A stretch of 64,000 bases of DNA from Hydrolagus colliei (GCA_035084275.1 CM068771.1:2170001-2234000), one strand, 5' to 3'; positions 2,318 to 62,251 are shown, counted from the stretch's first letter. Notes: generated by a model from the sequence alone, not told the origin. A program made the numbers and translations.

Positions 2318-2683
2318 CTTTCTGGCACGTGAACTGGTATGTTTGATTACAGAAATCATCAAACCACAGCCCTTTGATCATAGCCACACAAACTGGAGAA
2401 CTTAAGTAACCGTTTGGCTCCATAAATTTCCAGTTTGTATAATTTAGTTGTTCTCCAGTTGTCCACAGCCAGTTGGATTTGGAGCCTTTTTTATTGTACA
2501 GCCCAATCCAGAGAGGTACGTGTGTGTCAATGTTCTCAGAAATGAACAAGTCCTCCTTATAGCTCTGAATGCTGAGCAGATTCGTGTAGTTGATGTGGCA
2601 ATACTCCAAGGCTTCAGTCCAGTTTTTCTTTTGACCAATCAGGTAATACATCCTGTTAACTGACTTGTTATTCACTGCAGGAT
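2318..2683 (-). CDS. C-type lectin domain exon D (EPN motif)
   Basis: 366 bp, phase 1-1, ttctcatcag acceptor and G|GTAAG donor; NWTEALEYC, LWIGL, four Cys, MEPNG, WFDDFC. Confidence 0.9.
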
Positions 2684-3904
2684 CTGATGAGAAGCCATGA
2701 GACAAAGATTCACACTTCAGTGGAATTCAAGTGAAGATAAATCTGACATAAGATACCTATCCTTACTTCAAACCCTATCAAATTTGATCACACCCATGCA
2801 ATATTCTGGAATTCTGTGGAAACAGGCAGAACAGAAGGCATCCTTCTTTGTTTTGGTATACAAGTAGGTTCTTTACATTGTATATTCAAAGATGCATATT
2901 CACTGTATCTGAGAGTGATCGTGGATCACATTCTGGCTTCAAAGATGCAGGCAAGCAATTCTTCCCAATCAGCTCCTGTTAACACTGTGTGATATGTGCT
3001 GTGAGGGTTAAGCAGTTCGATTTCAAAAACCGCACACTCGAGTCAAATACACTCGCTTCCTGGCACCTCCCTTCCTCTCCGACTACCTCAGTCTCCAATC
3101 CACCACCCGGCCCTCCACTCAACTGCTCCCGGGTCACACTTTCAGCCATTACACTCATACCAAAAAACACAATAATAATAAATTCGTAATTTCAATCCAT
3201 GACTGAGTGTGGGACACTGCTGTGCGCAATTGGCTATTGAATTTCACCCACAAATATGAAGTCAATTCACTTTACAGTATATTCTGTGAAGTGCTTTGAG
3301 CCGAAAAAGCGCTATATCAAATGCAAGGATTATTATTATTATTAAAGCTGAATATTAAATAACTTTACATGGATTAATAATAAATTATTATTATATTATT
3401 AAAAACACTGAAACTCTTTCCCTCAATCCCACCACCTCTCTCCTCCTTTCCAAGTCCTGCCTGAAAAATTTCCTCTTCGACCACGCTGATGGCGAGTTGC
3501 ATATCCCCATTCCCCCACACCACACTCTGCAAAAGACTTCTCTTCTGTTACCAAACTAGTAATATTCAGAGTTATGGCTGTAGCTTTTTTTGGGAGCAAA
3601 AATTGAGGGATCTGAAGATAGCTGGTAGGGAGGTAAAGATTTTTTCCCAACTATGAAGACATAGCACATTGGAGCAGAGAGGTTTAAGAGGAGAAGTATC
3701 AAAGTAATCATGGAGTGGTTCCATAAGGTGAACAATGAGAAACTATTTTCACCGCCAAGTGGGCGGGTAACCCAAAGATGCCGATATAAAATAGTTATTT
3801 TTCAATATTGACAGAATGTGAGGAGATATGTTTTCATGCTGCCAGTTACAGTATTAGGGTCTGGAATGCATTGCCTGGGAAGGTGGTAGAAGCTTATACG
3901 ATAA

Positions 3905-4440
3905 AAAAAAAATAAGCGAGAAGTAGATGGTTATTTGGGAAGGAGAGGTGATGTGGGACCACATCACTCCTACCCTCACCTGTCTCCACTGGCTCCCCAT
4001 CCCCCACAGGATCAAATTCAAGATCCTCATCCCCATCTTCAAGGCCATTCACGGCTATCTCTCTGACCTGCCGTCTCCCTATCAGCATGCCCGCCACCTC
4101 CGTTCAGCAGGCTCTGGCTTGCTCCATGTCCCCGACCGAACTGCCCTACCATCGGTGGCCAGACTGCCTCTCTGCCCCCCACACTCTGGAACTCCATCCC
4201 ACAATCCATCCCTTCACCTCGCTTCTTCCCTTTCCTCCTTCAAGGCCGGTCTCAAGACCTTCCTCTTTGACCGTGCCTTCTGCTGCCCTCCAAACTCTCC
4301 CCCCTCTCCTACTTTCCTTCCCCCCACCCCTACCCCGAACTTTCCCCCACCACTCGGGTCCCGACCTAACTGTTCAGCGCCTTGGGACGTCCTCCCGATG
4401 TGAAAGCCGCTCTATCAATGTAATTTTGTTGTTATTGTAC
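3905..4440 (+). mobile_element. L2 3' fragment
   Basis: HITPTLTCLHWLPIPHRIKFKIL followed by the L2 tail cagcgccttgggacgtcc...gtgaaagccgctctat. Confidence 0.8.
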
Positions 4441-5373
4441 AGGGAGAGGGTTGAAGGAGTCGGTTTGATTTGAACAGCTCTTTTCAAAGAGCCAGCACAG
4501 ATACACAGATACGAAAGGCTGAATGGCCTCCTTCTGTGCTGTACAATTATATGATTCTATGATTTGATATCATTGACAGGGACAAAGGAAGAGGATGAGA
4601 TCATATGGTGATGCTTTGGCACTGGCCTTACCTGCAGCAATTTGAAACATGGGAATCTTCAAAGATGCGATTGGAACATTTTTAACTGCTAACTTGTTTG
4701 TAGGTTGTGGAGACATCACTGGTGTGACAGGAAGGGAAAATTCCTGAAGGTCTGTGGAGACAGAAATAACTTTGCTGTTCAGCAGACATTAAAACTAATC
4801 ATTCTTACATTTGAACTAGAGCTTTTCTCGTCTTAAAGATGTCTCAAAAAACCTCCACATAGTATATTGTAAAGTACATTTTTTGGTAAAATGTGGCAGC
4901 CAATTGCGCACAACAGTGTCCCACAAACAGTCATGGATTGAAGTGACTAATTTATTATTGCTTTTTTGATGGATTGAACGCGCTTTTTGCTGTTTGTGAG
5001 AAAGGTGACATGTTTTAAAGTCCTCTTTTCTTGCATTTCAAGTAGAAAAGTATTTTTGGAGGAGTGGAATCAATGGCTCGGGAGTCCAGGCTCTGGAAAC
5101 TAAGATCGAGTATTCAGCTCGATTGGAAGAGTTGGCAGCAAGATAGGCAGACTAACCTGCTCTTGTCCCGCAATTGAACACACCTCTTGGAAGGGTAGAA
5201 TCATAGAATCATACGGCACAAAAGGAGACCATTTGGCCCATCGACTCTGTGCCGGCTCTTTAAAAAGAGCAATTTAATCCCACTCCCCAGCTCTCTCCCC
5301 ATAACCGTACATAGAATCATAGAATTAATGGGTAAAACCCATTAAAGCTGAACATCCCATTGCCTGATCTTAC

Positions 5374-5739
5374 CTTTGTAGCAAATGAACCAATATGTTT
5401 TATTGCAGTAGTTGTCAAACCACAGGTCACTGAACACAGCCACACAGACATTGGACTTAACGTGAGTATTTTTCTCCTGATATCTCCACTGTGTATAATT
5501 GACTACTTCTCCATTTGCCCACACCCACGCGTCAGTGGAATTCATTTTCCTGAACAGACCAATCCAGAGAGTACGATTTCCGACAGTCAGCTGAGATATA
5601 TACTTGGCCTCCTCCAAATTCCGGATACTGACCAGATCTGTGTAGTGACTTTTGCAGTAATCCTGTGATTCGGTCCAGTTTTTCAATTGCTCGATTGGGT
5701 AATATTCTCTGTCCACAGGTTTATTTCCTGATGCCCACG
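5374..5739 (-). CDS. C-type lectin domain exon C
   Basis: 366 bp, phase 1-1, ttttcccctcag acceptor and G|GTAAG donor; NWTESQDYC, LWIGL, WFDNYC...FIC. Confidence 0.9.
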
Positions 5740-6240
5740 CTGAGGGGAAAACATCACATCAGCGAGCAACCATTGTAGATTCAAGTTTCATTTCTAAACA
5801 GATTGCCTTCACATCCCTTTGCAATTTCATTCCTTCTTGCTTCAGTAAACACTTCTTGCTGTGTTTTGCTACAAGCACATTTATGTAACTTATTGCTGTG
5901 CAGGTGTTATTACAGTATGTAACTTATTCTTCTGCACTGCCATTTGTGGCTAAACTTTCATCCACCATTTTCATCATATTATTATTACCATTTCCCTATC
6001 CTATGGAAATACTGTCATTCCAGACCTTTCAGCATTACTGCCTACTGTCTTCACACTAACCCCCTTTTGAAAGACATCTCACTTAACTCAGCTTTACGTC
6101 AACATGCTTAAATATTTGACCAAAATTTCTGTATAACTTTTCATCCATTGAACTCCACATTTGGGCAATGGCACCATCAGAGAGAACTGGCAGATTTGAA
6201 CAAATATTTGCCAAAAAGTGCAGCAAAAATGCGTTAGCAA

Positions 6241-6515
6241 CTACCATCTGTACATTGCACCAGGCTTATAAGTATTACTTACATATATTGGTCTGCGAAT
6301 GAACACGTGAACAGAGATTATGTAACCTGCTGAGGAAATCTTTCCAAAGTTAGGATACTTCAAAGCTGCAAGTTGAGTGTTTACTGCTACAGGAAGATTT
6401 GAGGGCTGCAAGGAATTGATTTCTGACTTGTTGGCGCTCGAAGCATTGGTAGGATTTGTGAACACAGCATCAGAAATAAAAGTTATAACAATCCTTGTGT
6501 TTGATATAATGCCCA
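6241..6515 (-). CDS. Candidate S/T/N-rich stalk or terminal exon between CTLD exons
   Basis: Phase-1 aag acceptor after gtctttctcattgtcac; open frame with NAS and NKS sequons; no homology recognised. Confidence 0.2.
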
Positions 6516-7140
6516 CTTGTGACAATGAGAAAGACTAAAAGTGATTCACAGAGCATTATACTGTACTGTTAAGTGAATTGGCTGTACATTTTGTGAGCGA
6601 AACCCACCAGTAAATTGCACATAGAAGTGTCTCACAAATGGAGTGAATGGTGTGACAACAGCAACAACAAAATTACACTTATAGTACGCCTTTCACGTTG
6701 GGAGGATGTCGCAAGGCGCTGAACAGTCAGTACAGGACCCAAGCAAGGGAGAGGGGCAGGCCGCGAGAGTGTTAGGAAGGAAGGGAGAGAGTTGGGAGGG
6801 CAGCAGAAGGCATGGTCGAAGCAGAGTATCTTGAGACCAGCCTTGAAGGAGGAGAGGGAGGAAGCAAGGCGAAGGGACTGTGGGATGGAATTCCAGAATG
6901 TGGGAGCGGATAATTTATAATATTTATTACCACCCTCTTAAATACACCTATGCTGTTTGCCTCAAAAACTCCTTGTGGTAGTGAGCTCCACATTTACACC
7001 AATTCTTTCTGCATAAAGAAATTTATTCTAACTTCACCATTTGATCGGTTTGTGACTATTAAATACGTCATCCCCAAGCTTGACAAATAGTATATATTTA
7101 TCAAGCTCCCAATCCAAGAAATTGGACGCTGTAATTATAC

Positions 7141-7509
7141 CTTCATAGCAGATGAACCAATAAGTTTGATTGCAGTAACCATCAAACCACAACGCATTGT
7201 TGATAGCCACACAGATCCCAGAAGCTGTGTAATTATTCATCTTTTCATCTTTCCAGTATGTATAATTGAATGGATCTCCGTTGGTCCATTGCCATCTATC
7301 AGAGGTTAGATTATTTTTGTACAGCCCAATCCAATACGATTCTCCCTCATTAAGCAGCTGAGCAGTAACATTAGTCTCCTCTGGGCTCTGGATGCTGACC
7401 AGGTCTGTGTAGTGAGCGCGGCAGTGATCCCGGGCTTCAGCCCATTTTAGTTTTACGTTAATCGTGTGGTATTTTCTGTCCAAGGATGGAAGAACAGTTT
7501 GGGCCAGAG
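7141..7509 (-). CDS. C-type lectin domain exon B
   Basis: 369 bp, phase 1-1, ctctttgcag acceptor and G|GTATAA donor; KWAEARDHC, YWIGL, WFDGYC. Confidence 0.9.
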
Positions 7510-8178
7510 CTGCAAAGAGGCAATTACATCAATCATTAACTCAACAACAACAACATTTGCGTTATGTAACACCCATCACACAGGTTACTGTCCCAGAGAA
7601 CTTGACAAGGTAGATAGTGGATTGCTCAGCTCTCTGGTGGAATGAGCCAGAACAGGAAGAAGGCATATTAAATCTGAACACTCAGCATGAAGTTCAGAAC
7701 AACAACAACAAAATTACATTTACAGAGCGCCTTTCATGTCAGGAGGACATCTGAAGGCACTGAACGGTTAGGTCGGGACCGAGCGGGGGGAGGGGAATGG
7801 TCACGGTAGGGGTGGGGAGAAGGAGAGTAGGAGAGAGGTGGGAGGGCAGCAGAAGGCACGGTCGAAGCGGAGTATCTTGAGACCAGCCTTGAAGGAGGAG
7901 AGGGAGGGAGCAAGGCAAAGGGACTGTGGGTTGGAATTCCAGAATGTGGGAGCGGATAATATGTAATATTTATTACCACCCCCTTAAATACACCTATGCT
8001 GTTTGCCTCCTCGTGGTAGTGAGCTCCACATTTACACCAATTCTTTCTGCATAAAGAAATTTCTTCTAACTTCACCATTTGATCCGTTTGTGACTATTAA
8101 ATATGTCATCCCCAAGCTTGACAAATAGAATATATTTATCAAGCTCCCAATCCAAGAAATTGGACGCTGTAATTATAC

Positions 8179-8547
8179 CTTCATAGCAGATGAACCAATA
8201 AGTTTGATTGCAGTAACCATCAAACCACAACGCATTGTTGATAGCCACACAGATCCCAGAAGCTGTGTAATTATTCATCTTTTCATCTTTCCAGTATGTA
8301 TAATTGAATGGATCTCCGTTGGTCCATTGCCATCCATCAGAGGTTAGATTATTTTTGTACAGCCCAATCCAATACGATTCTCCCTCATTAAGCAGCTGAG
8401 CAGTAACATTAGTCTCCTCTGGGCTCTGGATGCTGACCAGGTCTGTGTAGTGAGCGCGGCAGTGATCCCGAGCTTCAGCCCATTTTAGTTTTACGTTGAT
8501 CGTGTGGTATTTTCTGTCCAAGGATGGAAGAACAGTTTGGGCCAGAA
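8179..8547 (-). CDS. C-type lectin domain exon A
   Basis: 369 bp, phase 1-1; 4 substitutions relative to exon B by manual comparison. Confidence 0.9.
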
Positions 8548-9449
8548 CTGCAAAGAGGCAATTACATCAATCATTAACTCAACAACAACAACACTTGCGT
8601 TATGTAACGCCCATCACACAGGTTACTGTCCCAGAGAACTTGACAAGGTAGATAGTGGATTGCTCAGCTCTCTGGTGGAATGAGCCAGAACAGGAAGAAG
8701 GCATATTAAATCTGAACACTCAGCATGAAATTCAGAACAACAACAACAAAATTACATTTACAGAGCGCCTTTCACGTCAGGAGGACATCTCAAGGCACTG
8801 AACGGTTAGGTCGGGACCGAGCGGGGGGAGGGGAATGGTCACGGTAGGGGTGGGGAGAAGGAGAATAGGAGAGAGGTGGGAGGGCAGCAGAAGGCACGGT
8901 CGAAAAGGAAGATCTTGAGACCGGCCTTGAAGGAGGAAAGGGAGAAAGCGAGGCAAAGCGATTGCTGGATGGAGTTCAGAAGTGTGGGAGCAGAGCAGCT
9001 GAAAGCCCGGCCACCGATGGTATGGCGGATCGGGCGGGGGACATGAAGCAGGCCAGAGCCCTCTGGAGGGGATGAGCAGGCTGATAGGGAGACCGCAGGT
9101 CAGAGAGATAGGCGGGAGCAAGGCTTTGAATGGCCTTGAAAGTGAGGACCAGGGCCTTGAATTCAAATCTCTGGGGGATGGGGAGTCTGTGGAGACAGAC
9201 GAGTTTGGGAGTGATGTGGTCACGGAGCCCAGTGTGGGAGAGTACACGAGCTTCACAGTTCTGAATAATCTGCAGCTTGTGAAAATGTTTAAATTAGAAA
9301 AGAACAGATATCTTGGAAGGTAGTGGTTAGGAGAATTCCTGCATTGATATAACAAACTGGTGGAACACATTGAGTGGGCTGATTGCTACTTCATTGCTAT
9401 CCTGATATTGCCCAGGATCTCCTGTCCAGGATGATTAAAACTCACTCAC

Positions 9450-9495
9450 CTTGAGTTAGAAAGAGGAGGGGGAAAAATACCAACACTTTACTCAT
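9450..9495 (-). CDS. Signal-peptide exon of the lectin gene (MSKVLVFFPLLFLTQ)
   Basis: ATG plus hydrophobic run, G|GTGAGT phase-1 donor; splices in frame to exon A giving MSKVLVFFPLLFLTQVLAQTVLPS. Confidence 0.85.
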
Positions 9496-11899
9496 CTTCT
9501 CATAGGAAACTCGTTCCAAATATATGGGGTATGTTGCTGAGGAGAAACAATTGGCATCTATTTTGCACCAACTGTGACCTACATATAACAACGATAGAGA
9601 TATATTTTAATACAAACAACAAAAACAACAAAATCATATTTGTATAGCACCTTTCGTGTCAGGAGGACATCCCAAGGCGCTGGGCAGTTACTGCTTGAGA
9701 CCCAAGCTGAGGGATGTGTGGTAGGGAGGGGGAGAAGGAGTTGCCGAAGGGTCCATCGAAGAGGAGAGTCTTGAGGCAAGACTTGAAGGAGGCCAGGGAG
9801 AGGGCGAGGTGGAGGGACTGCGGGACAGAGTTCCAGAGGTTGGGACCAGAGTGGCTGAAGGCTCGCCCACCAATGGGTCGGGGGACGTGGAGAAGGCCAA
9901 AACCTGCTGAACGGAGGGGTCGGGCAGATTGGTAAAGGGATAGGAGGTCACGGATGCAGGGTGAGGGACGAGGTTGTGGAGGGCTTTAAATGTGAGGAGT
10001 AGGATCTTGAATTGGCTTCTCTGAATGATGGGGAGAAGTATTTGGGAGTCAGGACGCTACTAGAACAACAGCAACAACTTCTATTTATATAGCGCCCTCC
10101 ACGCCGGATGCCATCTCAGAGCACTTAAGACGCTGCCCCCAATAAACACATACATACATACATATATTATCGACTCTCTGAAATTCTAATAGGAGTAAAT
10201 GTAGACTCAGGAGGAACCACCAGATAGACAGGACTTAGGTTTAATGTTTTCTTGTAGAACAAAATTATAATCTGGAGTAAATGGTAATTATTACTATTAC
10301 AATACAACAGCATTATAAAACAACACTTATGTTTCCAAATTAACCCTAATCTGGAAACGAAGACAACTAAAATTTTAAGAGTGAATTGATCTTGAGGGCT
10401 AGGATGTGTTCTTTTGGCATCGGGTTGTTAATTTATTAATGGGCCTTTGCGAGCACCAATCTTGGCTTCCCTGTCTATAAAACAGATTCGGAAGCAAGTC
10501 TGATCGAGCTAGGACATCTGTGCGTAACCTGTCATTGTAGTATTAGAACTCATATTACCAGTGTTGCTTTGGGGGGGCACATCACTGGATAAGTAACTGA
10601 GGTATTCATTGTCACATTACAGTATAACAAAGTTCGAATGCGAGCAATTTATATATGTTTCTTCCCCCCAAAAGAGTAAGTTAAATGAGTTAACTGAGAC
10701 ATTTTGGAAGCACCGAGCACAAGTTCTATTATAAATAGTCGGCATCTCAATGTGGTGCTTACCAGATCTCCTCTACCCTGGTTGTCCAGGCTCCAAGTGC
10801 ACAATTTCCTGCAGAGTCAGCTTCGCTTTCGATCTTAACTCTTCTCACTTGTGAGGCAAGTGCTCCAACCGATAAACTACGCGACTCCAGCCTTAAATCT
10901 CAGCTTTACAATCAGTGGATGCATAGGATGAACACAGTGACAGACTAGGAGAAATTGGCTTCCTCGAAGAAACATGCAGGAATAAATCGTCTGTTTTCTG
11001 AAAACGAAATATCCCTTCTCTTCAGCACGAATAAACTAAATGAGGAGGGTTTCTGGGCAATAAAATGAGAGGCCACTTGAGTTACAGGTCCAGGAGACAA
11101 TTCTCTTCCATCCTGCTCTACCGCAAAGCAAAGGAACATACATAAAGGCTGGACAAAAGAAACACCAAGTTGCATCTAGTCTGCCGTCTCTGATCCTCGT
11201 CATCATATGCTACAATAATGGAGATGTTGATAGCAATTAATTTTGCATGGATTAGACTACATCACAGTGGGAAGCTTTGGAAACCCTCAGATCCAAAGTG
11301 GCCTTAGTTCTTTCACACATACTACAATTATAATGTTTCAAATTACTCACACTGTATAATATAAACAAAGCACTTGTTAAAATACCACCCCATTAAGATT
11401 ATCATGACTCAACTGTGCGTTCGCAAGCCATATAAGGCTCTCCCTCCAATCCAGCACTCCTCCTCCCCCCAAAAAACACACTTCCATTTCTGTCTGTTTT
11501 CTTTTCCTCCTTCGGATACATTTTCGGGAGTAATTACTTTTACACTCGGGGGATGGAATTTGCCACTGTTTCGTTCTAAAAAGTGACATTTTTCAACAAC
11601 AAAAAAACAACCATATTCAGTCAAAACGTCCTGTCTTAGAACAAGTCCTCTTCTGGGGATTTTTAAAAAAAAAGTAGACATTTTGACAGGACAGCAAATA
11701 TCACTGTTTCCACTGTTACAATTTTGTTGGGGAAGAGAAGGCAACATGGAATTGCTTTGGCAGAATATGGTGGAAAATGATTATTCGCAATTATTGCTTA
11801 CTAGGAAAAATGATATGCAAGCCAAACTTGTTCATGCAGCCAACTCCATTCAGCAACTACCCCCTATTAAATATCAAATGTGGAACAGTTGTACACTCG

Positions 11900-12005
11900 G
11901 AACAAAAACAGAAGTCGCTGGGAACACTCAGCAGGTCAGGCAGCATCTATGGAGAAAGGAAAAGTGAGTCAATGTTTCGGGTCCACGACCCTTCGTCAGA
12001 ACGGT
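11900..12005 (-). mobile_element. Penelope-like terminal repeat fragment
   Basis: ctgacgaagggtc..gacccgaaac..agatgctgcctgacctgctgag pattern, recalled as a Penelope-associated repeat of sharks; not database-checked. Confidence 0.6.
11968..12002 (-). ncRNA. Minimal type I hammerhead ribozyme relic
   Basis: GUU-CUGACGA-A-GGGUC GUG GACCC-GAAAC-AUU-GAC: core and stem II intact; stem III palindrome ACGU reads ACAU. Confidence 0.55.
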
Positions 12006-14288
12006 TCTGTAGTGTTCACAAGTGTGAAACACTGTCATTGAGGCAGAAGGAATACTTAAACAATAGTTAGTAGGATAGTTGGGGAGTTCGCGTATAGTAT
12101 AACAAAATAACCCTTGCATTTGTTATAGCGCCTTTTCACGTCTTGGGAATATTGCAGTGTTTCACAGGATACACTTTCAAGTGGATCAACAGTATATTTT
12201 TTGGTGAAACATGGCAGCCAATTGCGCACAGCAATGTACCACAAACAGCAATCCAGCTATGGATTGAGTGAGTGACCAAATTATTATTATTAATTTTGAA
12301 CGGATTATTGGCCATTTGAAAACTACAAGCTATTTGTCTTAACAACCGTGATTCCTACTTACCACAGTGTAAAACAGCGTGGAGGGAAATATAACAAAAT
12401 ATACTTGGAAAAAATATAACAAAATATCAGGGAAGGTTTGTACACTGACATGGTCATTTCATGTTCCTTCGGATTCTGAGGCACAATATGATTTGTACTT
12501 AAACAAACAGGCAACTTTCAGATCCATGTGAGAACATCTGAAAGGTTGGAGGTTTTGCTTCTACAGCGTATCAATATGTTTTTCTGCGATTTATCCTTCA
12601 AAGTAACCAAGTTATCAAGAGAAACAAAAGTGCATTGTTTGCGCTTAGACCAGTGTTGCTCAATTGCGTCCACCCCTTGTGAATTTTCCTTCATAGTCTC
12701 ATCACAAGCATAGAAGCATAGCCCCCCCCCCCCCCACACTCTCCCTCCCTCTCTCTCTGAGCATCTTTCCTAATGTATCAGGAACTGAGCTCACACCCTC
12801 AGAGTTGACACTTCAGAACATATCAAACCGTCAGCTCCTTTCACTCAGCAGTTTCCAGCCTTTAGCCTCTTTGCCCCCATCCTTTGGAACTCCATCCCAA
12901 TAGTCCCAATTTCCCTTGCTCCTTCCCTTGTCTACTTCCAATTTCTGGTGTGTGCTCTACTAGGATTTAGACTGGACGGACGAGAGTACACAGACCACAC
13001 CTGTGGTACAAGGCTGTTTCCCAATCCCTGAGGGCGAAGAGTAGAAGACAGAGCAAGGAGACTGATTCTTGCTGTTAAACAGTTAGAGTGATGAGCTATG
13101 ACAAAATGACTAAGATAATCTAGGAATATCCAGAATCATCATTTAAAAAAACCATCTCATTGATTGTGAAACAACAACAACAAAATTACATTTATAGAGC
13201 GCCTGTCACATTGGGAGGACTTCCCGAGGTGCTGAAACAGACATACCTAGAACTAACTGTACATGGTCGATTGCAAATAGAAACCACAAATGCGAATCAG
13301 ATCACAGAGAATTTGCATTTGTTATGTTGTGGGAACCAAAAATCCAATGCATATATTCCTAAAACTTTACATTTCACTCTAGGAAGCCTCATATCAACAT
13401 ATCATAATAATAATAATAATCCTTGCTTTTGATATTGTGCTTTGCACATCTTATTGACGTCTCACAGCGCTTCACAGAATATACTGTAAAATGAATTGAC
13501 TGTATATTTGTGAGCGAAATGCAACAGCCAATTGTGCACAGCAGTGCCCCACAAACAATTGTGGATTGAAATGACCAATTTTTTTATCGTTTTTTTTAAT
13601 GGATTATTATTAGGATTATTAGTATGCACTCTTTCAACACATCTTTGCCCAAGCATTCATTTTACATTCAAGAAGGAAACAGAGGTTCTGAGTTAAAATT
13701 CAATTGCTTTGTTTAGCGCGCTTAAAAATGAGAAGTCTTAGGTTTGATTCCAGAGTTGGGAGAAACATTGCATAGGTTTCCTTACTCCATACACATACCT
13801 CTATTAACTTACCATAGAATAGGAACCAGGTTGTTAGTCAATTGGCGGATCAATTTCCCAGGAGTCACGAACCATCCCAAAATGTACAATCAAATAATAA
13901 TGTGTTCACTCAAGCCTTAACTGTGGGACATTGCTTTGGGCAGTTGCTTACCAGGTTTTTCCTACAAAATACAGTCAATTAAATTTGTACTGCATCCTGT
14001 AAAGAGTTTGAGATATCTCGAAGATGTGATTAGGCAAATGCAAGGATTATTGTTAATATTTACAGTTTGCTATGGAAGAGGGAGGTCAACTCTCTATGTG
14101 TTGAGTTGAAGGACAGTGAGATTAATGTGTGTGTACATTGAGTCAGATCTTCTTTCATTGACTTGAGTGGCATTTAACCCAGAAAACTGCTGCCGTTACA
14201 CCCCTCCTGAAAACACCCACCCTTGATCCCTCTAATCTCTCTCACTACCATCCCACCTCCCACTTGGATTACTCCAACACAGTCAAGT

Positions 14289-14616
14289 GGAGCTCCTGTA
14301 GCTCAGTGGTTAGAATACTCGCCTTACAAGCGTGAGACCTGTGTTCAAATCCAGGAAGGTCAGGGCGAAACCTTGGGCAAGTTTCCTTACTCCACACACA
14401 CACACCTAATAATAATCCGTCCAAAAAAATACCTATAATAAAAGTTGGTCATTTTTAATCCACAACTGTTTGTGGAGGACACTGCTGTGCGCAATTGGCT
14501 GCCGCGTTTCGCCCACAAATGTACAGTCAATTCACTTTGCAGGATATTCTGTTTGAGATGTCGATAAGATGTGAAAAGCGCTATAACAAATGCAAGGATT
14601 ATTATTATTATTATAA
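14289..14616 (+). mobile_element. Full-length tRNA-derived SINE (DeuSINE-like body, L2-type tail); dozens of relatives across the window
   Basis: A box tagctcagtggttaga, B box gttcaaatcc, body gctgtgcgcaattggctgccgcgtttc, tail gtgaaaagcgctata..atgcaagg(att)n. Confidence 0.9.
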
Positions 14617-14618
14617 TA

Positions 14619-14830
14619 CAGTAAAAGCCTATTTATCCGTGACCCGATCAACCGTAACTTCCATATAACCAGCACCACAAAAAAGGTCCACATTCGATTA
14701 ACTGGAATTTATCTGGAAAAATGCATTAAAAACAATAATAATTTGGGGGTGTTTTCAACCGAATATCCGACACGCGCTTTAACCGGCATCGTCCAGGTCC
14801 CAAGGGTGCTGGATAAATGGGCTTTTACTG
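14619..14830. mobile_element. Tc1/mariner (pogo/Tigger-like) MITE, 212 bp
   Basis: 20-bp TIRs cagtaaaagcctatttatcc / ggataaatgggcttttactg (1 mismatch) flanked by TA on both sides. Confidence 0.9.
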
Positions 14831-15437
14831 TATATATTATAACACACTCCTCGCCGGTCTCCCCAGCTCTTCTATTCAAAAGATCCATCTGATTCAGAAA
14901 CTCTTTGGAACCAAGTACTGACCTGGACCAAACTTTGTACCCACAACATTACCAGTTCTGGCCAAGCATCCACTGGCTCACCATCGCTGAATGCATTGAC
15001 TTCAAGATCGTCACACTCGTGTTCAAATCCCCTCACTCTCTGGGACGCTCTATAAATGTCATTTTGTTGTTCTTGTTGTTGTGACTTCCGTACTTCTCCG
15101 ACCTCCTCACTCCGCAATCCACCAGTTGGAGGCTCCGCTTGACTGACACCAACCACCTGGTGTTGGTAATAAAAAATAGAAAATAAAAATATTTTTGTAC
15201 TAATTCGAGACTACAGAATACAGTAAAAAAAATTGTTCATTTTCAATCCACGATTGTTTGTGGGACACAGCTGTGCGCAATTGGCTGCTGCGTTTTGCTC
15301 ACAAAGTATACAGTCAACTCAGTTTACAGTATACAGTATTCTGTGAAGCGCTTTGAGACGTCGAGAGGACAGCGCTATATCAAATTCAAGGATTATTAAT
15401 ATGTGGCTCAACGTTTGCTGAAGAGATGAGAGACGTG

Positions 15438-15713
15438 AATAATAATAATCATCCTTGCATTTGATATAGCGCTTTTCACATCCTATTGACGTCTCAAAGC
15501 GCTTCACAGCCAGTTGTGCACAGCAGTGACCCCACAAACAGTCATGGACTGAAAATGACCACATTTATTACCGGAGGGATTATAATATTAGGCGTGTGTG
15601 TGTGTATGTAGTAAGGAAATTTGCCCAAGGTTTCGCCCTGATCTGCCTGGGTTCGAACACGGGTCTCACGCTTGTAAGGCGAGTGACTCTAACCACTGAG
15701 CTACAAGAGCTCC
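15438..15713 (-). mobile_element. tRNA-derived SINE of the same family
   Basis: Reverse-complement head ggagctcttgtagctcagtggttagag and tail. Confidence 0.85.
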
Positions 15714-15754
15714 TATCGACCTATCAGAGCGATGCAAAGCAATTGTTTGGCCTG

Positions 15755-16132
15755 TCAACCAATAGGAATTGGAGGTGAGCGGGGCGGGTGTTACAAATAG
15801 CCAATGGCAGTGAGGGTGGGCGACGATGAGGAACGATGGGAGTGATTGACCGGTGAGTTGATTGACAGTCACTTTGGCGTAGGAAATAGCTGACCTGTAG
15901 CCAATAGGGAGCGAGTAGGCGGGAGTGGAATGACGGTTGGCGAGATAGCGGGGAGAGGGGGTGAGGGGGAAATGATTGACGTGGACACGTACCAATCAGT
16001 GCGCTACGTCTGATTGATATGTGAGGTGACCAATAGAAAGCTACGATCTCGGGGGGGAGAGGGGGCGTAACGGCGGGAAAGATCAAGTGGGAGGGGTCAG
16101 AGTGAGGGTTGGAGGAACACAAACATGGCGGC
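15755..16132 (+). promoter_or_regulatory. CCAAT-rich GC promoter of the ZNF gene
   Basis: CCAAT at 15759, 15801, 15901, 15992, 16030; ATTGG at 15768; GC box at 15781; TGATTGACAG at 15859; YY1-type AAACATGGCGGC over the ATG. Confidence 0.75.
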
Positions 16133-16163
16133 AGAGAAGGGGACAGCGAGAATCGTGGAGCAG
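16125..16163 (+). CDS. Putative first coding exon of the ZNF gene (MAAEKGTARIVEQ)
   Basis: aacATGG context downstream of the promoter; CAG|GTCAGT donor in phase 0, matching the ZNF exon acceptor phase. Confidence 0.6.
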
Positions 16164-16220
16164 GTCAGTGAGGGACACAGGGAGAGACGGAGGGAGGGTG
16201 GGGGAGAGAAAGAGGGAGGG

Positions 16221-16559
16221 NNNNNNNNNNNNNNNNNNNNNNNNNNNNNNNNNNNNNNNNNNNNNNNNNNNNNNNNNNNNNNNNNNNNNNNNNNNNNNNN
16301 NNNNNNNNNNNNNNNNNNNNNNNNNNNNNNNNNNNNNNNNNNNNNNNNNNNNNNNNNNNNNNNNNNNNNNNNNNNNNNNNNNNNNNNNNNNNNNNNNNNN
16401 NNNNNNNNNNNNNNNNNNNNNNNNNNNNNNNNNNNNNNNNNNNNNNNNNNNNNNNNNNNNNNNNNNNNNNNNNNNNNNNNNNNNNNNNNNNNNNNNNNNN
16501 NNNNNNNNNNNNNNNNNNNNNNNNNNNNNNNNNNNNNNNNNNNNNNNNNNNNNNNNNNN
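16221..16559. other. Assembly gap (N run)
   Basis: N characters. Confidence 1.
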
Positions 16560-17880: not shown

Positions 17881-18744
17881 AGATGCTGATGGGAGCCCAT
17901 CGGGATGGCCTCGATCCTATTGATGTTCCCCTGTACAAAGTTAGCACTCAATAATAGTAATAATATTGTACTAATAGTAATCCTTGCATTTGATATTGCG
18001 CCTTATCTCGTCTTGCAAGAGGTCTCAAAGAGCTTCACATGATATACATTGAAATGACTGTATATTTTGTGGATGAAACACGGCATGCAATAGCTCACAG
18101 CAGTGTCCCACAAACAGTCATGGATTGAAGTGAAACCCTGGTCCGTGCCTTTGTCACCTCTCGGCTGGACTATTCCAATGCCCTCCTCGCCGTTCTCCCC
18201 CACTCCGCAATCCACAGAGTCCAGCTCATTCAGAACTCTGCCGACCGCGTTCTCACCTGCAGCAAACTTCGCTCCCCTATTACCACAGTCCTTGCCAGAC
18301 TTCACTGGCTCCCTGTCCCCGAGAGGATCGACTTCAAGATCCTCATCCTTGTCTTCAAATCCCTTCACTCCCCCACCTCCCTGACCTCTCTCCTCATACC
18401 AGCTCCCGTTGCCTTCGCTCCACTGGGTCTGGCCTCCTCCATGTCCCCCCGAATCCTCCGCTCCACCCTCGGCGGCCGTGCCTTCAGCCACTAAGCCCCG
18501 AGGCTCTGGAACTCCCTTCCTCACTACCTTTGCCTCGCCCCCTCTCTTCCCAGTTTCAGGTCCCAGCTGAAGACCTTTCTCTTCGACCGCGCCTTTGGTC
18601 ACCTTTCTCCCCCTGCCCCTGGCTCGGTCCCGGGATCCGCTATTGTGAGGCGCTCTGAGACGCCGTCCGGCGTGGAGGGCGCAGCATAAATCAAAGTTGT
18701 TGTTGAAGTGACAAATGTATCATTTATTATAATTTCCTTTGAAG

Positions 18745-34335: not shown

Positions 34336-34339
34336 TGAG

Positions 34340-36861: not shown

Positions 36862-36899
<38 letters not shown>

Positions 36900-42950: not shown

Positions 42951-43157
42951 NNNNNNNNNNNNNNNNNNNNNNNNNNNNNNNNNNNNNNNNNNNNNNNNNN
43001 NNNNNNNNNNNNNNNNNNNNNNNNNNNNNNNNNNNNNNNNNNNNNNNNNNNNNNNNNNNNNNNNNNNNNNNNNNNNNNNNNNNNNNNNNNNNNNNNNNNN
43101 NNNNNNNNNNNNNNNNNNNNNNNNNNNNNNNNNNNNNNNNNNNNNNNNNNNNNNNNN
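42951..43157. other. Assembly gap (N run)
   Basis: N characters. Confidence 1.
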
Positions 43158-52225: not shown

Positions 52226-52357
52226 CATTTTTCTCTCTATTTCTTATCCAGACGAGAATCACAACAACAATCCCGACAACAGACAACAGGAGGGTTCCGA
52301 TGATCAGGCCAATGATCCAGGAAGCAAGAACGGCCGGAGTTCTCTCTGTTTTCCCAT
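52226..52357 (-). CDS. MHC class I connecting peptide and transmembrane exon
   Basis: 132 bp, phase 1-1; WIIGLIIGTLLLSVVGIVVVILVW followed by IRNREK. Confidence 0.9.
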
Positions 52358-52928: not shown

Positions 52929-53207
52929 CCCACGGCACCTCCATCGCCCCCTGGAGGCTGCTGTGCTCCACCAGACAGGAGAAGCCTTGCCCCTCCATGG
53001 AACCCGTCTCCAGCTCCATCTGCTTCATTATCTGAAAGGTGCCATCGTGGTTGGGTAATACACCACTGGACACCACCTCGTGGACAGTGTTGCCGTCCCT
53101 TGTCCAGGTCACCTCGATGGGCCGCGGATAGAAGCCAGTGACAAGACAGGAGAGAAGGGCTCTCCCCGCCAGGTCCCTCCTGTAACTGACTGAGACGTCA
53201 GGGCGGC
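52929..53207 (-). CDS. MHC class I alpha-3 (Ig C1) exon
   Basis: 279 bp, phase 1-1; LSCLVTGFYPRPIEVTW...LPNHDGTFQ...FSCLVEHSSL. Confidence 0.95.
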
Positions 53208-53319: not shown

Positions 53320-53595
53320 TCTGTCTCTGGAACATGAATTTTGAATGCTGATAATGGTTCTCCATCCAAGTAAGACAATCATTCTCCAGTTCATGTTTCC
53401 AATGCTCATTCATGACTCTGTCACTGTCCAGTTTCTCTCTCAGGATCTGAGCCTCAGGAACAGCGGAAATCCATCTCAGCTCATTTTTATCGAAGCTGAT
53501 AAAATCCTTACCATCAAATGCCACTGAGATGTGTCCATGTGTTCTGCCGTCCTCACTCACTGCACAGCTATACATCACCTGGGCATAGTGAGCAC
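53320..53595 (-). CDS. MHC class I alpha-2 exon
   Basis: 276 bp, phase 1-1; QVMYSC...AFDGKDFISFDK...LENDCLTW. Confidence 0.95.
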
Positions 53596-55726: not shown

Positions 55727-55978
55727 CTCTAGTAATATTCCTTCTCGTCATCACGTAAAACATATTCTCCTTTATGAGAATACGATCTTCCTCTATACCT
55801 ATGGATTCGTATTGTTCTCTAACAATCCGCTGTAAACTCGATGTCCAGGTGACAAACCTCCGATTGTTGCTGTCGTAGTGATCCACTTCAACATCATCCA
55901 CCATCACCGCACGGCGAAATTCTAGAGACTCTCCGCCTCCTGACACTAACGTGTGGAATATTCTGAACACGTGAGGCT
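55727..55978 (-). CDS. MHC class I alpha-1 exon
   Basis: 252 bp, phase 1-1; PHVFRIFHT...MVDDVEVDHYDSN...MTRRNIT with the N86-type sequon. Confidence 0.9.
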
Positions 55979-57127: not shown

Positions 57128-57336
57128 CAGTATACACACAGGGAGAGAGGGGGGAGAGCAAACTCACACAACTGTGATAGACCAAGAAAAGGAGCCCTGG
57201 TGCAATCTCTGTCCACATCAACCCCACGCCTTCCCTCAGGCCCTCCTCACCTCCCCCAGTTACTCAACCCTAATGACGGAGCCACTCCCCCACCTTCCCC
57301 AGCCCCTCACCCCATCAACCAGCCCCTGTTCTGCAA

Positions 57337-57975
57337 TTATCTCACCCCCCACGCTGCCGAAACGCTCGTACATCACCTCACGGCTGGACTATGGGAACTC
57401 TCTCCTTGTCGGCCTCCCCAGCTCCTCCATTCACATGCTGCAGGTCATCCAAAACTCTGCAGCCCGTGCACTATCCCGCACCCGCCTCCGTGACCACATA
57501 AGCCCCACCCTCGCCCGTCTCCACTGGCTCCCCATCCCCCAGAGGATCGAGTTCAAGATCCTTGTCCTCGTTTTCAAGGCCTTACACGGCCTTGCCCCGC
57601 CATATTTAACCCATTTACTCTCCCCCTATAAGCCCACCCGGACCCTCCGTTCAGCAGGACTTGGCCTGCTCCAAGCCCCCCGCCCGAACCGCCCCACCAT
57701 CGGAGGCCGGGCCTTCAGTTTTTCCACTCCCACCCTATGGAATTCCACCCCCACAATCCCTCCACCTTGTTTCCTCTTTCAAGACCGGTTTGAAGACTTT
57801 TCTTTTCGACCGTGCCTTCTGTTCCACCCCGAACTTTTCGACCTCCCCTATGTGTTTCACCCCTTCCCGAACACTCCCCTCCCATCTCGGGTCACACGCC
57901 TCCTGTGCAGCGCCTTGGGACGTCCTCCCCACGTGAAAGGCGCTCTATAAGTCTAATTTGTTGATGTTGTTGTTG
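57337..57975 (+). mobile_element. L2 3' end
   Basis: ITSRLDYGNSLL...HWLPIPQRIEFKIL to the tail. Confidence 0.9.
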
Positions 57976-57979
57976 CTCT

Positions 57980-59520
57980 CATCCTCACACCCTCACCTAG
58001 CTCCTCACTCCCTCCACCAGCCACTCTTCCCTTCCCAGCTACTCCCCACCCTCCCCAGCCATTCGCACCTTCTCTCACCCCACAACCCCTTGTCCAACCC
58101 CAACAGCCCGTCCCCACCTCTCACCCCTCCACTGGCACCTCCCCGGCCACTCTTTCCCCTCACTCAGCCACTTACACCATCCCTCAGCAGACCCACAAAC
58201 CTACCAACACACCCTCAGCCACTCAACAACCCCTCATCTCATCAAAAACCCACTTCAGACTCTTACGAAACACTTCAACACACTATCAGCCCCTCGTCAA
58301 CACATCATCAAGTCCCTGAACACAACTCAACACAATGACACACCTTCAAAATAGCCTCAGCACCTCAACAACTCTCTCAACCCACACTCAGTCCCTCAGC
58401 ACACCATCATCCCCATCAAGACCAGCCTTAACCACCCAACACACCCTCAATCCCTCAACACACCACTCAACATCACCTCATCCCACAAACATAGCCTCAG
58501 CCTCTGAACACACCCTCAATAACCCCAGTCCATCATTACACCCTCAGCCAGTCAACACAACCTCAGCACCACAACACAATCTCAAACTGGGGAGCCCTGT
58601 AGCTCAGTGGGTAGAGCACTCATTTTGCAAGCAAGAGACCTCGGTTCAATTCCAGTCAGAACAAAATCTTCAGCAAGTCTCCTTACTCCATATGCCTGTA
58701 AATAATCGCTCCAATTTTTTTTTAATTGGTCATTTCATTCCACAGCTGTTTCTGGGAAACTCTGTGGGCAACTGCCTGCTGAGTTTCACCTCCAAATATA
58801 CGGTAAATTTACTTTATACCATCTTCTGTGAAGCGTTCTGAGACGTCTAGAATATGTAAAAAGTGCTATAGCAAATCAAAAGGATTATTACTAAATCCAC
58901 TCAACATGCCCTCAGCCACTCAACATACGCTCATATCCTCAACATAGCCTCAAACTCCCTTCCCCTCAACACCCCTTCAGCATAACCTCATCCCTTCAAA
59001 ACAGCCTCAGCATCTCAATACCCCCGTCAACATACCCTCAGCAAACCCTCATCCGATCAAGTCCCCCATCAACCCCACAACAAATTGCTCAACACACACT
59101 CAGCTGCTCAACACAACCTCAACACAACCTCCACCCCTCAACATATCCCTCAAAACACCTCTCATCCAATCAACACAACCTCAGACACTCAACACACACC
59201 TCAACACACATCCAACATCTGCTTTTCTCCCCCTTAAATCCAACCCTTCGCCCAACCACTATCCATCTCAACCCCTTCCCCCTCCGCCATGAACAAACCT
59301 CTTCATCCCCCCACGAATACTCCCCCTCATCCCCCCATTCCCCCGGCACCCCCCCCCCACTCCCTCAGCCAACCCACTCCCCAAGCCACGCTCCAGCTCA
59401 ACCCCCAACCACCCTCTCTCACCCACTATTCTCCTCCACCAAACCATCACCGTCAACCATTATACCCCTCACCCCCTCCCCACTCAGCCCCTCCACTCCC
59501 CCAAATAAGAGAATAATATC
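57980..59520. repeat. C/A-rich degenerate repeats (ctcaacacaccctcag-like) with an embedded SINE at ~58590-58875
   Basis: Visual periodicity. Confidence 0.75.
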
Positions 59521-59553
59521 AAACAGTAACAGTCAGAGTCTGTGGCCACTTAC

Positions 59554-59620
59554 TGTCCAGCCCCCCACACACAGACAGGAGGACAGGGAGAGCCATCAGA
59601 GACCTTATCATCCTGGCCAT
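59554..59620 (-). CDS. MHC class I leader exon (MARMIRSLMALPVLLSVCGGLD)
   Basis: ccagccATGG start, hydrophobic core, A|GTAAGT phase-1 donor in frame with alpha-1; not in the ORF track. Confidence 0.85.
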
Positions 59621-59724
59621 GGCTGGTCACTGACACTGACAGTCTGTCTGTCCAGCCAGACCCTCTGCTCCCCACCACAGCCTCTCAGCTCTAACCCCAA
59701 CACTGTCTCTGATCAGACTCTCAC

Positions 59725-59743
59725 TGACTCACTCACAGCCAAT
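59725..59743 (-). promoter_or_regulatory. Class I proximal promoter: Y-box-like ATTGG and TGAGTCA
   Basis: CCAAT at 59739-59743 and TGACTCA at 59725-59731 on the plus strand, ~110-120 bp upstream of the ATG. Confidence 0.45.
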
Positions 59744-60172
59744 GGGAGGATCTCAGGAGCTGATCATAACCTGTCTCTGGGTAAAAGGCTCTGAGACAGG
59801 TTGTGATCTGTGGTTTCTCACTGTGTGAGTGAGAGAGTCTGTCTGTCTGTATGAGTGTGTACATGTTTCTCTGTCTGGATATGTGAGAGCGTATCTGAGT
59901 GTCTCTGTGTGTGCATTAGTGTGTGTCTGTGTGTGTGTGTGAGAGAGAGAGCCTATGTGTGTGTTCGTAGCTGTGTCTGTGTCTATCTGTGTCTGTCTGT
60001 GTATCTGTTTGTGTATCTGTGTCTGTCTGTCAAAGTTGAAGTTGTCCCAGAAGAAGTCACTGCATGCAAATGCCATTCTTGTATCTGTAGGAACTAAATT
60101 ACAAGCTTAACTCTCCCGTTTCTTTAACCGTTTTCAGTTGTTAATATGACATGAACATTAACGGCAGAAACC

Positions 60173-60182
60173 GTTTCACTTT
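60173..60182 (-). promoter_or_regulatory. IRF-element-like motif AAAGTGAAAC
   Basis: Sequence match only; lies between the divergent class I and TRIM starts. Confidence 0.35.
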
Positions 60183-61774
60183 AAGTGGAAACCAAAGGGT
60201 TAACTCTCACTGAGCAGCCTGTGGTGATCAGCATGAACTGTGTGCTTTAGTTACACAAACCATGTTGCTCCAACTCAGTGAATTTAAACCGCCCACAGTC
60301 AGTGGCCGTGGTTTTAAAAGTTGATGTATAAGTTTCTTTATTTTGCTGTGTTTTTGTTTCACGTAATCCATCCTCCTGTCTCGCTCAACTTCTGTTCATT
60401 TGTTTATTTGAGGGAACAGCATTTTGACCGTTTCTGACTCCTCACAAGTATGAAGCAGATTTAACTGTTTGAGAGCCTTCAGATTAGCCAATAAATCATC
60501 TCCCAGTCCTGTCTGGAGGCATATCGGTGGAACACTGGCATCTATACGTTGCTCACTCAGTTGTCTCATCGCTTTTAACTTTTTCATATTCTTTCAAATT
60601 CAGAAATAATCATTTTGCCCAAACTTTCCTCCAAAATTTGACACTTTAATCCCCGTCTTAGTTTTATCTTTACAATCCTTCAGTGTTGGTGGTTTTGTTA
60701 TTGGATTTGAGTTTTTACCTTCACCCCTTCTTTGACCTGTAGAATTAGTTTGTCCAATTTTGTCTTTTCAACCTCACAATGAACTGTTCTTCCGCACTCT
60801 TCCAGTTATTTTCTTGTACTGAGGCAGTTACTTGATGCCCCTTTTAATGTTGTGGCTGCCTCTCGCTGTCTGACTTCCCATTGTGTGGGTGATGTGACGT
60901 GTGAAACATCGCCAAGAGGGAACATGTACATGAGGAAGAGGAGGAGGCCAAGGAGGGAGCCCTGGGCTACACCACACATGACCAGTGGGGGAAGGAGGAG
61001 AATCTGTTGGAAGAGACCATCCCAGGTAGCAAGCCCATTTGGGCCCCATATGGGACAAATTGGGTTGATCCATACCCATATGGGCCCCACATGGGCTTGC
61101 TACCTGGGATGTTGAGTGAAAGTTTTCCCTCCCGCACTCCAACCCCCCCACTCCACCCTCCTCCTCACTCCACCCCTCCTCCTCTAAGCTCACACTGCAG
61201 GCTGATGATCCATTGCAGGGCTCACAGTCTCAAAATTGTCTGAGTGACATCACTGCGTGACAGTCACACTCACTCACACACTAGTCTGAGTGTGATCACA
61301 GGGCAAAACCTTGGGCAAGTTTCCTTACTCCACAGGCCTGATAATAATCCGTCAAGAAATAAAACAATAACAAATTGGTCATTTCAAACCACGACAGTTT
61401 CTGGGGAAGCTGCTGTGCACAATTGGCTGCCGTGTTTTGCCCACATACATAGAGTCAACTCTTGAGTCTTTACAGTATATTCTGTGAAGTGATTTGTGAT
61501 GTCTAGAATACATGAAAAGCGCTACATCAAACGCAAGTATTATTATATTATTGCTGCTGGTAAACAGGGATGTCTGCAGTAAGCCAATATTCCCTAATGT
61601 TTTCCCCACCGGGAATCCAGCCTGTGTCCTCTCGCTCACTGACCTCTATGCTACAGGACACCATTATTAGCCGCTCGAGGTTTTATTCTGGTTTTTCGGT
61701 TAGAATTTGTTTCCGTCACAATAATAATTACATGTGGAAACCGAGGAATTGTTATGAGAGGCAGGCAAGTCTAA

Positions 61775-61830
61775 GCCACGCCCACACCGACACTGAGTCA
61801 CCAAACAAGGAAGTTAGACAAGGAAGTCTT
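61775..61830 (+). promoter_or_regulatory. TRIM proximal motifs (GCCACGCCC, TGAGTCA, two AGGAAGT)
   Basis: KLF/SP, AP-1 and ETS-type matches immediately 5' of the ATG. Confidence 0.35.
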
Positions 61831-61840
61831 GGAGATGAAA

Positions 61841-62251
61841 ATGGCTTCTAGAGATCAGGTTGAGAGTCTGACTGAGGAGTTAAACTGTCCAATTTGTCTG
61901 GATTTCTTTAATGATCCTGTGACCCTGGAATGTGACCACAACTTCTGCCGCTCCTGTATCACACGGAGCTGGGAAAAGCAGGAGACACACTCCTGTCCGG
62001 AATGTCGAAGGGTGATTCCAGGAACTAACCTGAGACGCAATCGTACGCTGCGTAATCTGACAGAAAAAGCTCGGAATCTGAGCCTGAATCTGACACAAGC
62101 TGACAAGAAGCTTCACTGTGAGGAGCATCAGGAGGAACTGAAGCTGTTCTGTGAAACAGACAAGAAACTGATGTGTGTGATTTGCAGAGATGCCCGAGAG
62201 CACAGAAACCACAGCTTCATCCCCATTAAGGAGGCCATTCAGGTCTATAAG
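61841..62251 (+). CDS. TRIM E3 ligase first coding exon (C3HC4 RING + B-box 2; TRIM39/RFP-like); alternative ATG at 61835
   Basis: CPIC...LECDHNFCRSC...CPEC; CEEH...LFCETD..LMCVIC...EHRNH; AAG|GTAAAA phase-0 donor. Confidence 0.92.

Follow-up and report, generated by a model that had tools for sequence, protein, structure and literature searches.

A putative nonclassical class I gene among TRIM sequences in the chimaera Hydrolagus colliei, in a region resembling in gene content the MHC class Ib part of the elasmobranch genome

Introduction

Class I genes of the major histocompatibility complex (MHC) are accompanied by other multigene families in several described systems. In chicken, the compact MHC-B (TRIM/BG/B-NK/B-lec) and MHC-Y regions hold class I genes beside TRIM-B30.2, zinc-finger and C-type lectin genes, and the human extended class I region contains TRIM10, TRIM15, TRIM26, TRIM27, TRIM31, TRIM38, TRIM39 and TRIM40 together with ZNF/ZSCAN clusters, G protein-coupled receptors (GPCRs) of the olfactory receptor type and BTN genes. 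Here we analyse a 64,000-nucleotide stretch from the holocephalan Hydrolagus colliei (GCA_035084275.1 CM068771.1:2170001-2234000, hereafter the window), in which a class I gene, TRIM/B30.2 sequences, a C-type lectin gene, a C2H2 zinc-finger (ZNF) exon and a KY-like gene lie within 60 kb. Data on the MHC are scarce for holocephalans, which form the sister group to the sharks and rays.

The closest described system among cartilaginous fishes is the elasmobranch MHC (Verissimo et al. 2023, PMC10751288). In its main text, this study reports ZNF genes around class Ia-like genes without ever mentioning TRIM. For chromosome 34 of the sawfish, its supplementary gene list contains about 45 A33-like, nuclear factor 7 (NF7)-like or TRIM39-like genes spread through the class III and extended MHC regions. 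Three of these TRIMs lie about 85 kb from MHC-Ib genes, and two A33-like genes directly follow SLC44A4. The same list places a ZFP2-like ZNF between B2M and MHC-Ib, 13 genes named 'GPR139' interleaved with MHC-Ib, C4 and TRIM39-like genes, and one 'macrophage mannose receptor 1-like' gene at 6.1 Mb. The study terms the holocephalan MHC data-deficient, and in its paralogon table the MHC-6 cell of the elephant shark Callorhinchus milii is blank. Boudinot et al. (2011, PMC3137616) proposed the 'TRIM-B30.2 in ancestral MHC' hypothesis, predicted that the TRIM linkage would reach sharks and asked for evidence from the shark lineage, on which the window bears.

Results

An intact, putatively nonclassical class I gene of a holocephalan lineage

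The window is vertebrate DNA of 40-55% GC. A Pfam screen, run over the 409 six-frame segments of 55 or more amino acids that its 64 kb contain, together with exon mapping bore out the five gene types reported by an initial annotation made from the sequence alone. The recognised exons extend from the splice donor of the last lectin exon at 2318 to the splice donor of TRIM exon 1 at 62251. All best protein matches are to C. milii, and none of them is identical (58-81%; class I 58-74%, KY-like 78-80%, B30.2 75-81%, RING/B-box at most 66%). Since every best match is to C. milii, the cartilaginous fish suspected by the initial annotation can be specified as a holocephalan. None of the proteins encoded in the window is present in a database of 5.8 billion proteins.

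The class I gene is intact from the leader to the transmembrane exon: its five mapped exons (59620-52226, minus strand) have canonical AG/GT phase-1 splice sites and contain no stop codon (Table 1). The encoded protein aligns with class I chains of the PDB across residues 3-262 (E = 5e-42). In an alignment numbered after HLA-A2, the disulfide pairs Cys101-Cys164 and Cys203-Cys259 and the N86 glycosylation site are retained. We scored the peptide-terminus set Y7, Y59, Y/R84, T143, K146, W147, Y159 and Y171 in this alignment and found I7, Y59, R84, L143, K146, L147, E159 and H171, with L143 and L147 common to the window gene and its C. milii paralogues. Because only three of the eight peptide-anchoring residues are kept, the gene is predicted to be nonclassical by the peptide-terminus criterion. 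The linkage to TAP1/2 and PSMB8/9 that would be expected of a class Ia gene was likewise not found by the six-frame screen within the 64 kb.

In a maximum-likelihood tree, the window gene is sister to 14 C. milii paralogues, whose clade has a support of 96 in the Shimodaira-Hasegawa-like approximate likelihood ratio test (SH-aLRT). The window gene and the 14 paralogues group together with 100% support on a long stem (0.94), outside every sampled elasmobranch clade. Judging from this tree, the gene is part of a multigene lineage found only in holocephalans. The UEA lineage of sharks has reportedly gone undetected in chimaeras, which would agree with holocephalans having a lineage of their own.

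TRIM sequences on both sides of the class I gene

TRIM sequences lie about 2-9 kb from the class I gene on the same gap-free contig. On one side, a first exon encoding RING and B-box2 domains starts at 61841 (plus strand), head-to-head with the class I leader exon starting at 59620 (minus strand) and 2.2 kb from it; the later exons of this TRIM gene are outside the window. On the other side lie a last exon with the complete PRY/SPRY (B30.2) region and, head-to-head with this exon at a distance of about 900 bp, an inverted partial B30.2 pseudo-exon, with gap 3 about 400 bp to its left. Upstream of the complete B30.2 exon, the window showed no exon for a RING, B-box or coiled-coil domain, either by the six-frame Pfam screen or by tblastn of 120 TRIM proteins, and we therefore regard this exon as an orphan. 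As it is located 5' of the RING exon on the same strand, the two must belong to separate genes. Thus, although the TRIM and B30.2 domains that the initial annotation had joined into one gene type are indeed present, they come from different genes, to which the inverted relic has to be added.

C. milii has compact TRIM genes, each 2.9 kb long, and the DNA homology between them and the orphan B30.2 exon ends at the exon edges. Stand-alone genes consisting of PRY/SPRY only, like the orphan exon, occur in the C. milii TRIM cluster on WEZY01002742.1 at 3668-4255 and 19408-19923 (195 and 171 amino acids), so that such relics can be considered typical of the TRIM family.

Related loci in elasmobranchs and in C. 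milii

To search elasmobranch genomes we used a chimeric TRIM query in which the RING/B-box exon of the window is joined to its B30.2 exon, a construct made for searching that does not represent a gene. Among elasmobranch TRIMs, the closest bear the annotation A33-like, nuclear factor 7-like or TRIM39-like. In all eight species in which both could be placed (Mustelus, Hemiscyllium, two Chiloscyllium, two Scyliorhinus, Cetorhinus and Heterodontus), the contig of these TRIMs has exactly the length of the contig that carries class I, which indicates that the two share a chromosome. Together with the sawfish list, this result agrees with the proposal that class I, TRIM/B30.2 and ZNF genes are linked here as in an MHC, the match being to the elasmobranch MHC class Ib regions.

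The agreement differs from family to family. In gene-family content, TRIM and ZNF match the elasmobranch class Ib neighbourhood, the GPCR relic described below does so less certainly, the lectin corresponds loosely and the KY-like gene not at all. On scaffold MU250313.1 of C. milii, a fragment of a choline-transporter-like gene (249-3225, minus strand) directly adjoins five tandem class I paralogues, between which there is no TRIM, ZNF, lectin or KY gene. The five-type set is therefore not a repeated unit, and the 'cassette' of the initial annotation, taken as a repeated or functional unit, does not hold. The choline-transporter-like gene is a possible counterpart of SLC44A4, a gene of MHC class III; if it is, this class I family would be anchored to the MHC framework. 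The C. milii paralogues and TRIMs are distributed over separate scaffolds, none of them placed, with lengths of 49 kb, 34 kb, 36 kb and 4.1 Mb.

Table 1. Coordinates of the features recognised in the 64-kb window (CTLD, C-type lectin-like domain; LINE and SINE, long and short interspersed nuclear elements; TM, transmembrane helix)
Feature	Position	Strand	Remarks
Class I leader exon (MARMIRSLMALPVLLSVCGGLD)	59554-59620	-	Phase-1 donor; identified by DNA homology with C. milii paralogues at their 5' ends
Class I alpha1 exon	55727-55978	-	43-49% identical to paralogues; without Pfam match when taken alone
Class I alpha2 exon	53320-53595	-	Pfam MHC_I 1.7e-16
Class I alpha3 exon (C1-set)	52929-53207	-	Pfam C1-set 2.1e-18; 88% identical to C. 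milii paralogues
Class I connecting-peptide/transmembrane exon	52226-52357	-	
TRIM exon 1 (RING + B-box2)	61841-62251	+	Pfam zf-C3HC4_4 1.3e-15, zf-B_box 5.6e-11; tblastn at most 66% to C. milii A33-like TRIMs
Complete PRY/SPRY (B30.2) last exon	44798-45346	+	Pfam; open frame, stop codon
Partial B30.2 pseudo-exon	43564-43894	-	C-terminal half of SPRY, frameshift near 43640; tblastn, Pfam SPRY 7.7e-9
C2H2 zinc-finger exon, 8 fingers	22083-23060	+	Pfam zf-C2H2 2.8e-52; ends at stop
Class A GPCR relic (TM2-TM3, DRF motif)	26131-26388	+	86 codons between stops, cut by repeat; Pfam 7tm_1 3.3e-6, below gathering score
KY-like last exon (Ig-like_KY, stop codon)	28091-28996	-	Pfam 1.4e-21; 78-80% identical to C. 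milii A0A4W3H0H1
KY-like exon (NEFYFLTSPEHF...)	31349-31522	-	tblastn 88% to P0117
KY-like exon with His and Asp of triad	32876-33070 (approximate ends)	-	tblastn
KY-like exon with Cys of triad (GKTVCSGYARLF)	35313-35423	-	Pfam Transglut_core 3.3e-5; tblastn
Lectin exon 1, signal peptide (MSKVLVFFPLLFLTQ)	9450-9495	-	Phase-1 donor GTGAGT
Lectin CTLD exon A	8179-8547	-	369 nt, phase 1/1; Pfam Lectin_C 4.9e-18
Lectin CTLD exon B	7141-7509	-	Tandem duplicate of A, 1038-bp period, 98% identical
Lectin CTLD exon C	5374-5739	-	Pfam 7.1e-18; splice sites
Lectin CTLD exon D	2318-2683	-	Pfam 1.2e-18; EPN motif, WFD replacing WND; phase-1 donor
Gap 1	16221-16559		Intergenic, at start of GA-rich polypurine array (1.4 kb; ~16180-17950)
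Gap 2	33563-33701		In KY-like intron, between SINE tail and TG-rich array
Gap 3	42951-43157		Intergenic; SINE copy left, unique sequence right
LINE-derived repeat copy	41748-42470	-	At least 11 further sites besides the three listed
LINE-derived repeat copy	57336-57972	+	
LINE-derived repeat copy	34337-34776	+	

Zinc-finger exon, GPCR relic and KY-like gene

The screen of the window found neither an upstream exon nor an N-terminal domain for the ZNF exon. The class A GPCR relic, the one additional coding relic that the screen brought up, is 46.5% identical to an intact GPCR open reading frame (ORF) of 325 amino acids in C. milii (WEZY01002787.1, 20580-21557, minus strand; 7tm_1 9e-21). This ORF lies 4.7 kb downstream of an A33-like TRIM and is unannotated as a gene, and the protein collection contains no exact match to it. 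The best PDB match of the relic is GPR139 (E = 0.0024); for the full-length C. milii relative, NMUR2 and GPR52 come first at about 1e-5.

The KY-like gene encodes a transglutaminase-like core, with the triad Cys in GKTVCSGY, the His in EHVWN and the Asp in FLIDS, followed by Ig-like_KY domains; no further 5' exons were found in the window. One C. milii protein is its only relative above 50% identity, the next being the KY proteins of frog, ray, sturgeon and eel at 27-31%. We dropped the gene as a synteny anchor, as the sole close relative is this C. milii protein, for which no contig is recorded.

A multi-CTLD lectin gene

The lectin gene consists of a signal-peptide exon and four CTLD exons, each a single phase-1 exon with a Lectin_C E-value of about 1e-18. 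CTLD exons A and B belong to a tandem duplication at 6657-8994 with a period of 1038-1046 bp, which carries a CTLD exon together with its intron repeat and reflects a very recent duplication of the exon or else a duplication introduced by the assembly. Since exon D ends in a donor at 2318, the gene runs beyond the start of the window. The first 2.2 kb are filled by reverse-transcriptase fragments of LINEs at 12-758 (plus strand), 806-1165 (minus strand) and 1779-2102 (plus strand), and the next lectin exon is therefore absent from the window. As WFD replaces WND in all four CTLDs and EPN occurs in D only, canonical calcium-dependent sugar binding by the predicted protein appears doubtful.

The nearest solved CTLDs are those of PLA2R, DEC-205 and MRC, all of the mannose-receptor family, with NKR-P1B just tenfold weaker. 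The architecture of that family, in which a Cys-rich ricin-type domain and a fibronectin type II (FNII) domain precede 8-10 CTLDs and a transmembrane segment, is not seen here: the signal exon splices straight to the first CTLD, and no other domain was found between 9450 and 8547. With a signal peptide and at least four tandem single-exon CTLDs, the protein is not a type II lectin of the natural killer (NK) type, in which a single C-terminal CTLD is spread over several exons, as the initial annotation had itself cautioned. The parallel that it nevertheless drew with the lectin genes of chicken MHC-B and MHC-Y fails for this reason, the analogy to B-NK and B-lec included.

Repeats, gaps and linkage blocks

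The recognised exons add up to 5.9 kb of the 64 kb; the remainder is repeat-rich and includes extended microsatellite arrays besides numerous LINE and SINE copies. A LINE-derived repeat with an ORF-like stretch of 240 amino acids (...LHWLPI...FKILVLTYKALHGLAP...) is present in at least 14 copies, some of which are 95% identical to each other. One copy is also found 5' of a C. milii TRIM gene. A piece at 43893-44121 that had been considered 'TRIM promoter-like' was rejected, being itself a copy of this repeat. Repeat copies share 95-97% identity within the window and at most 88.6% with about 130 kb of C. milii loci; among the C. milii scaffolds themselves, identity reaches 91%. Low-complexity arrays, GA-rich polypurine at 16180-17950 and TG/CA-rich at 33702-34320 and 36900-39500, account for long spurious ORFs (SLSLS..., CVCVC...) in the ORF list.

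The three assembly gaps that had been noted as interrupting contiguity are all present, but none of them touches a recognised exon, and gap 2 is bridged by exons of the KY-like gene. The exons flanking gap 2 are on the same strand, collinear and, according to tblastn, consecutive in homologues (residues 207-243 and then 248-311 of P0126). Because the Cys exon on one side and the His/Asp exon on the other match consecutive residues of the homologue, the join at gap 2 is supported. The window thus falls into three blocks: 1-16220, with the lectin gene alone; 16560-42950, with the ZNF exon, the GPCR relic and the KY-like gene; and 43158-64000, gap-free, with both B30.2 exons, the class I gene and TRIM exon 1.

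Discussion

We consider it probable, at roughly 0.6, that the window is a holocephalan immune-gene region shaped by birth and death, with a content like that of the TRIM-rich class Ib part of the MHC in elasmobranchs. The class I product would be a membrane-anchored heavy chain pairing with beta2-microglobulin, and its ligand may be something besides conventionally anchored peptides, or the protein may itself serve as the ligand of a receptor. Putative class IV TRIM material (A33-, NF7- or TRIM39-like) flanks it on both sides, in the form of an apparently live gene 2.2 kb upstream and two B30.2 relics 7-9 kb downstream. Such relics are the debris that repeated tandem duplication and decay would be expected to leave, which suggests a birth-and-death history. 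The ZNF exon and, less certainly, the GPCR relic represent families that are also found throughout elasmobranch class I regions, while the multi-CTLD lectin and the KY-like gene would be neighbours only, a functional tie between them and class I forming no part of this interpretation. The five gene types would accordingly make up a neighbourhood to which common descent and duplication in place gave rise, and not a cassette that functions together or transposes.

Several observations weigh against this interpretation. No TAP, PSMB, class II, BRD2, C4, B2M, RXRB or NOTCH4 sequence was found in the window by the six-frame Pfam screen. The three blocks are joined by the scaffold only, and the lectin and ZNF/KY blocks reach the class I contig solely across gaps 1 and 3. 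As the C. milii paralogues are unplaced, only analogy would assign the region to an MHC. A shared chromosome is weak evidence of close linkage, for in Hemiscyllium a distance of 25 Mb separates the one TRIM from the one class I gene that were sampled. The TRIM, ZNF and CTLD families are large and clustered, and listed gene names are not orthology. The KY-like gene has no precedent in the available portions of the gene lists for the MHC region, and the assignment of the GPCR relic as GPR139-like is weak and is treated here only as a lead.

A more far-reaching version of the same interpretation, which we put forward tentatively and hold with less than even confidence, sees in the window what corresponds in holocephalans to the class Ib block of elasmobranchs. 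A neighbourhood of nonclassical class I, A33/TRIM39-like TRIM, C2H2 ZNF and orphan GPCR genes would then have been in place more than 400 million years ago, in the ancestor of the chondrichthyans, and would have been kept through independent turnover of every family, with the multi-CTLD lectin and the fast-evolving KY-like gene added in holocephalans. If so, it would provide direct support, from the most basal lineage of jawed vertebrates, for the presence of TRIM-B30.2 in the ancestral MHC.

Alternatively, the window could belong to a class I satellite of the kind seen in chicken MHC-Y, without genetic linkage to the MHC core of holocephalans, a lineage-specific class Ib family having expanded elsewhere in the genome amid resident multigene families. 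This we think unlikely, though it deserves serious consideration. It would account for the lack of framework genes in the window, for the dispersal of the C. milii paralogues and TRIMs over separate unplaced scaffolds and for the blank MHC-6 cell of C. milii in the paralogon table of PMC10751288; according to the same study, class Ib genes lie beyond the MHC in all vertebrate groups studied outside elasmobranchs. However, the same TRIM family resides in the MHC in sawfish and on the class I chromosome in all eight elasmobranchs compared, and the C. milii class I cluster abuts the choline-transporter-like gene that may be the counterpart of class III SLC44A4.

It is improbable that the association is due to chance or to an assembly artefact, with large, mobile, clustered families meeting on the same scaffold or being brought together by misassembly at gap 1 or gap 3, so that only the class I-TRIM adjacency would be real. 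In its favour, nothing spans gaps 1 and 3, the lectin has its contig to itself and is not of the NK type, the KY-like gene lacks an MHC precedent in the lists available, the C. milii class I array is free of these neighbours between its genes, and recognised exons make up so small a part of a repeat-rich window. Nevertheless, the class I gene, both B30.2 exons and TRIM exon 1 share a single gap-free contig, the KY-like gene bridges gap 2, and counterparts of the ZNF, the GPCR and the mannose-receptor-like lectin are found on the sawfish MHC chromosome.

Finally, a functional unit in which the head-to-head class I and TRIM genes share their 2.2-kb interval (59620 to 61841) as a bidirectional, infection-inducible promoter, coupling for example TRIM-dependent sensing to class Ib display, is very improbable: about 350 bp 5' of the class I start are 71% conserved with the C. 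milii paralogues and an inverted CCAAT box lies about 120 bp upstream of the start codon, but these paralogues retain the class I promoter without a TRIM neighbour, the interval contains LINE and SINE fragments, and no interferon-stimulated response element (ISRE) or kappaB consensus occurs in 59400-62000, giving no sign of shared class I-TRIM regulation.

Read as a probable class Ib/TRIM region, the window adds a holocephalan data point to two questions, whether class Ib genes were originally all MHC-linked and whether TRIM-B30.2 genes were part of the ancestral MHC. It decides neither as long as the scaffold is not anchored to the MHC core.

Comparison with the described systems brings out both shared families and lineage-specific features. 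The human extended class I region resembles the window in having class IV TRIM, ZNF and GPCR families beside class I. It differs in that its expansions are lineage-specific, and the GPCR of the window is not an olfactory receptor and is a relic only. The lectins of the chicken MHC are type II, single-CTLD and NK-receptor-like, unlike the signal-peptide lectin of the window with its tandem single-exon CTLDs. The C. milii array on MU250313.1 has the same class I lineage, exon structure and leader as the window gene, with 58-74% protein identity and, over the alpha2-intron-alpha3 segment, 87% DNA identity. Unlike the window, it consists of five tandem class I genes with none of the other families between them, and the window gene is an outgroup to all five.

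Elasmobranch class Ib regions (Verissimo et al. 2023, PMC10751288) differ from the window in that its class I gene falls in a holocephalan-only clade and a KY-like gene is present. Since the window is without the framework genes of the elasmobranch MHC, regional homology would be indicated by family content and not by orthologous anchors. The spacing is 2-8 kb in the window, compared with tens of kb in sawfish. The sawfish list shows a mannose-receptor-like lectin on the class I chromosome, as in the window, at 6-8 Mb from class I in sawfish compared with about 50 kb here. The elasmobranch regions share with the window a setting of nonclassical class I genes amid A33-, NF7- and TRIM39-like TRIMs, C2H2 ZNFs and orphan class A GPCRs.

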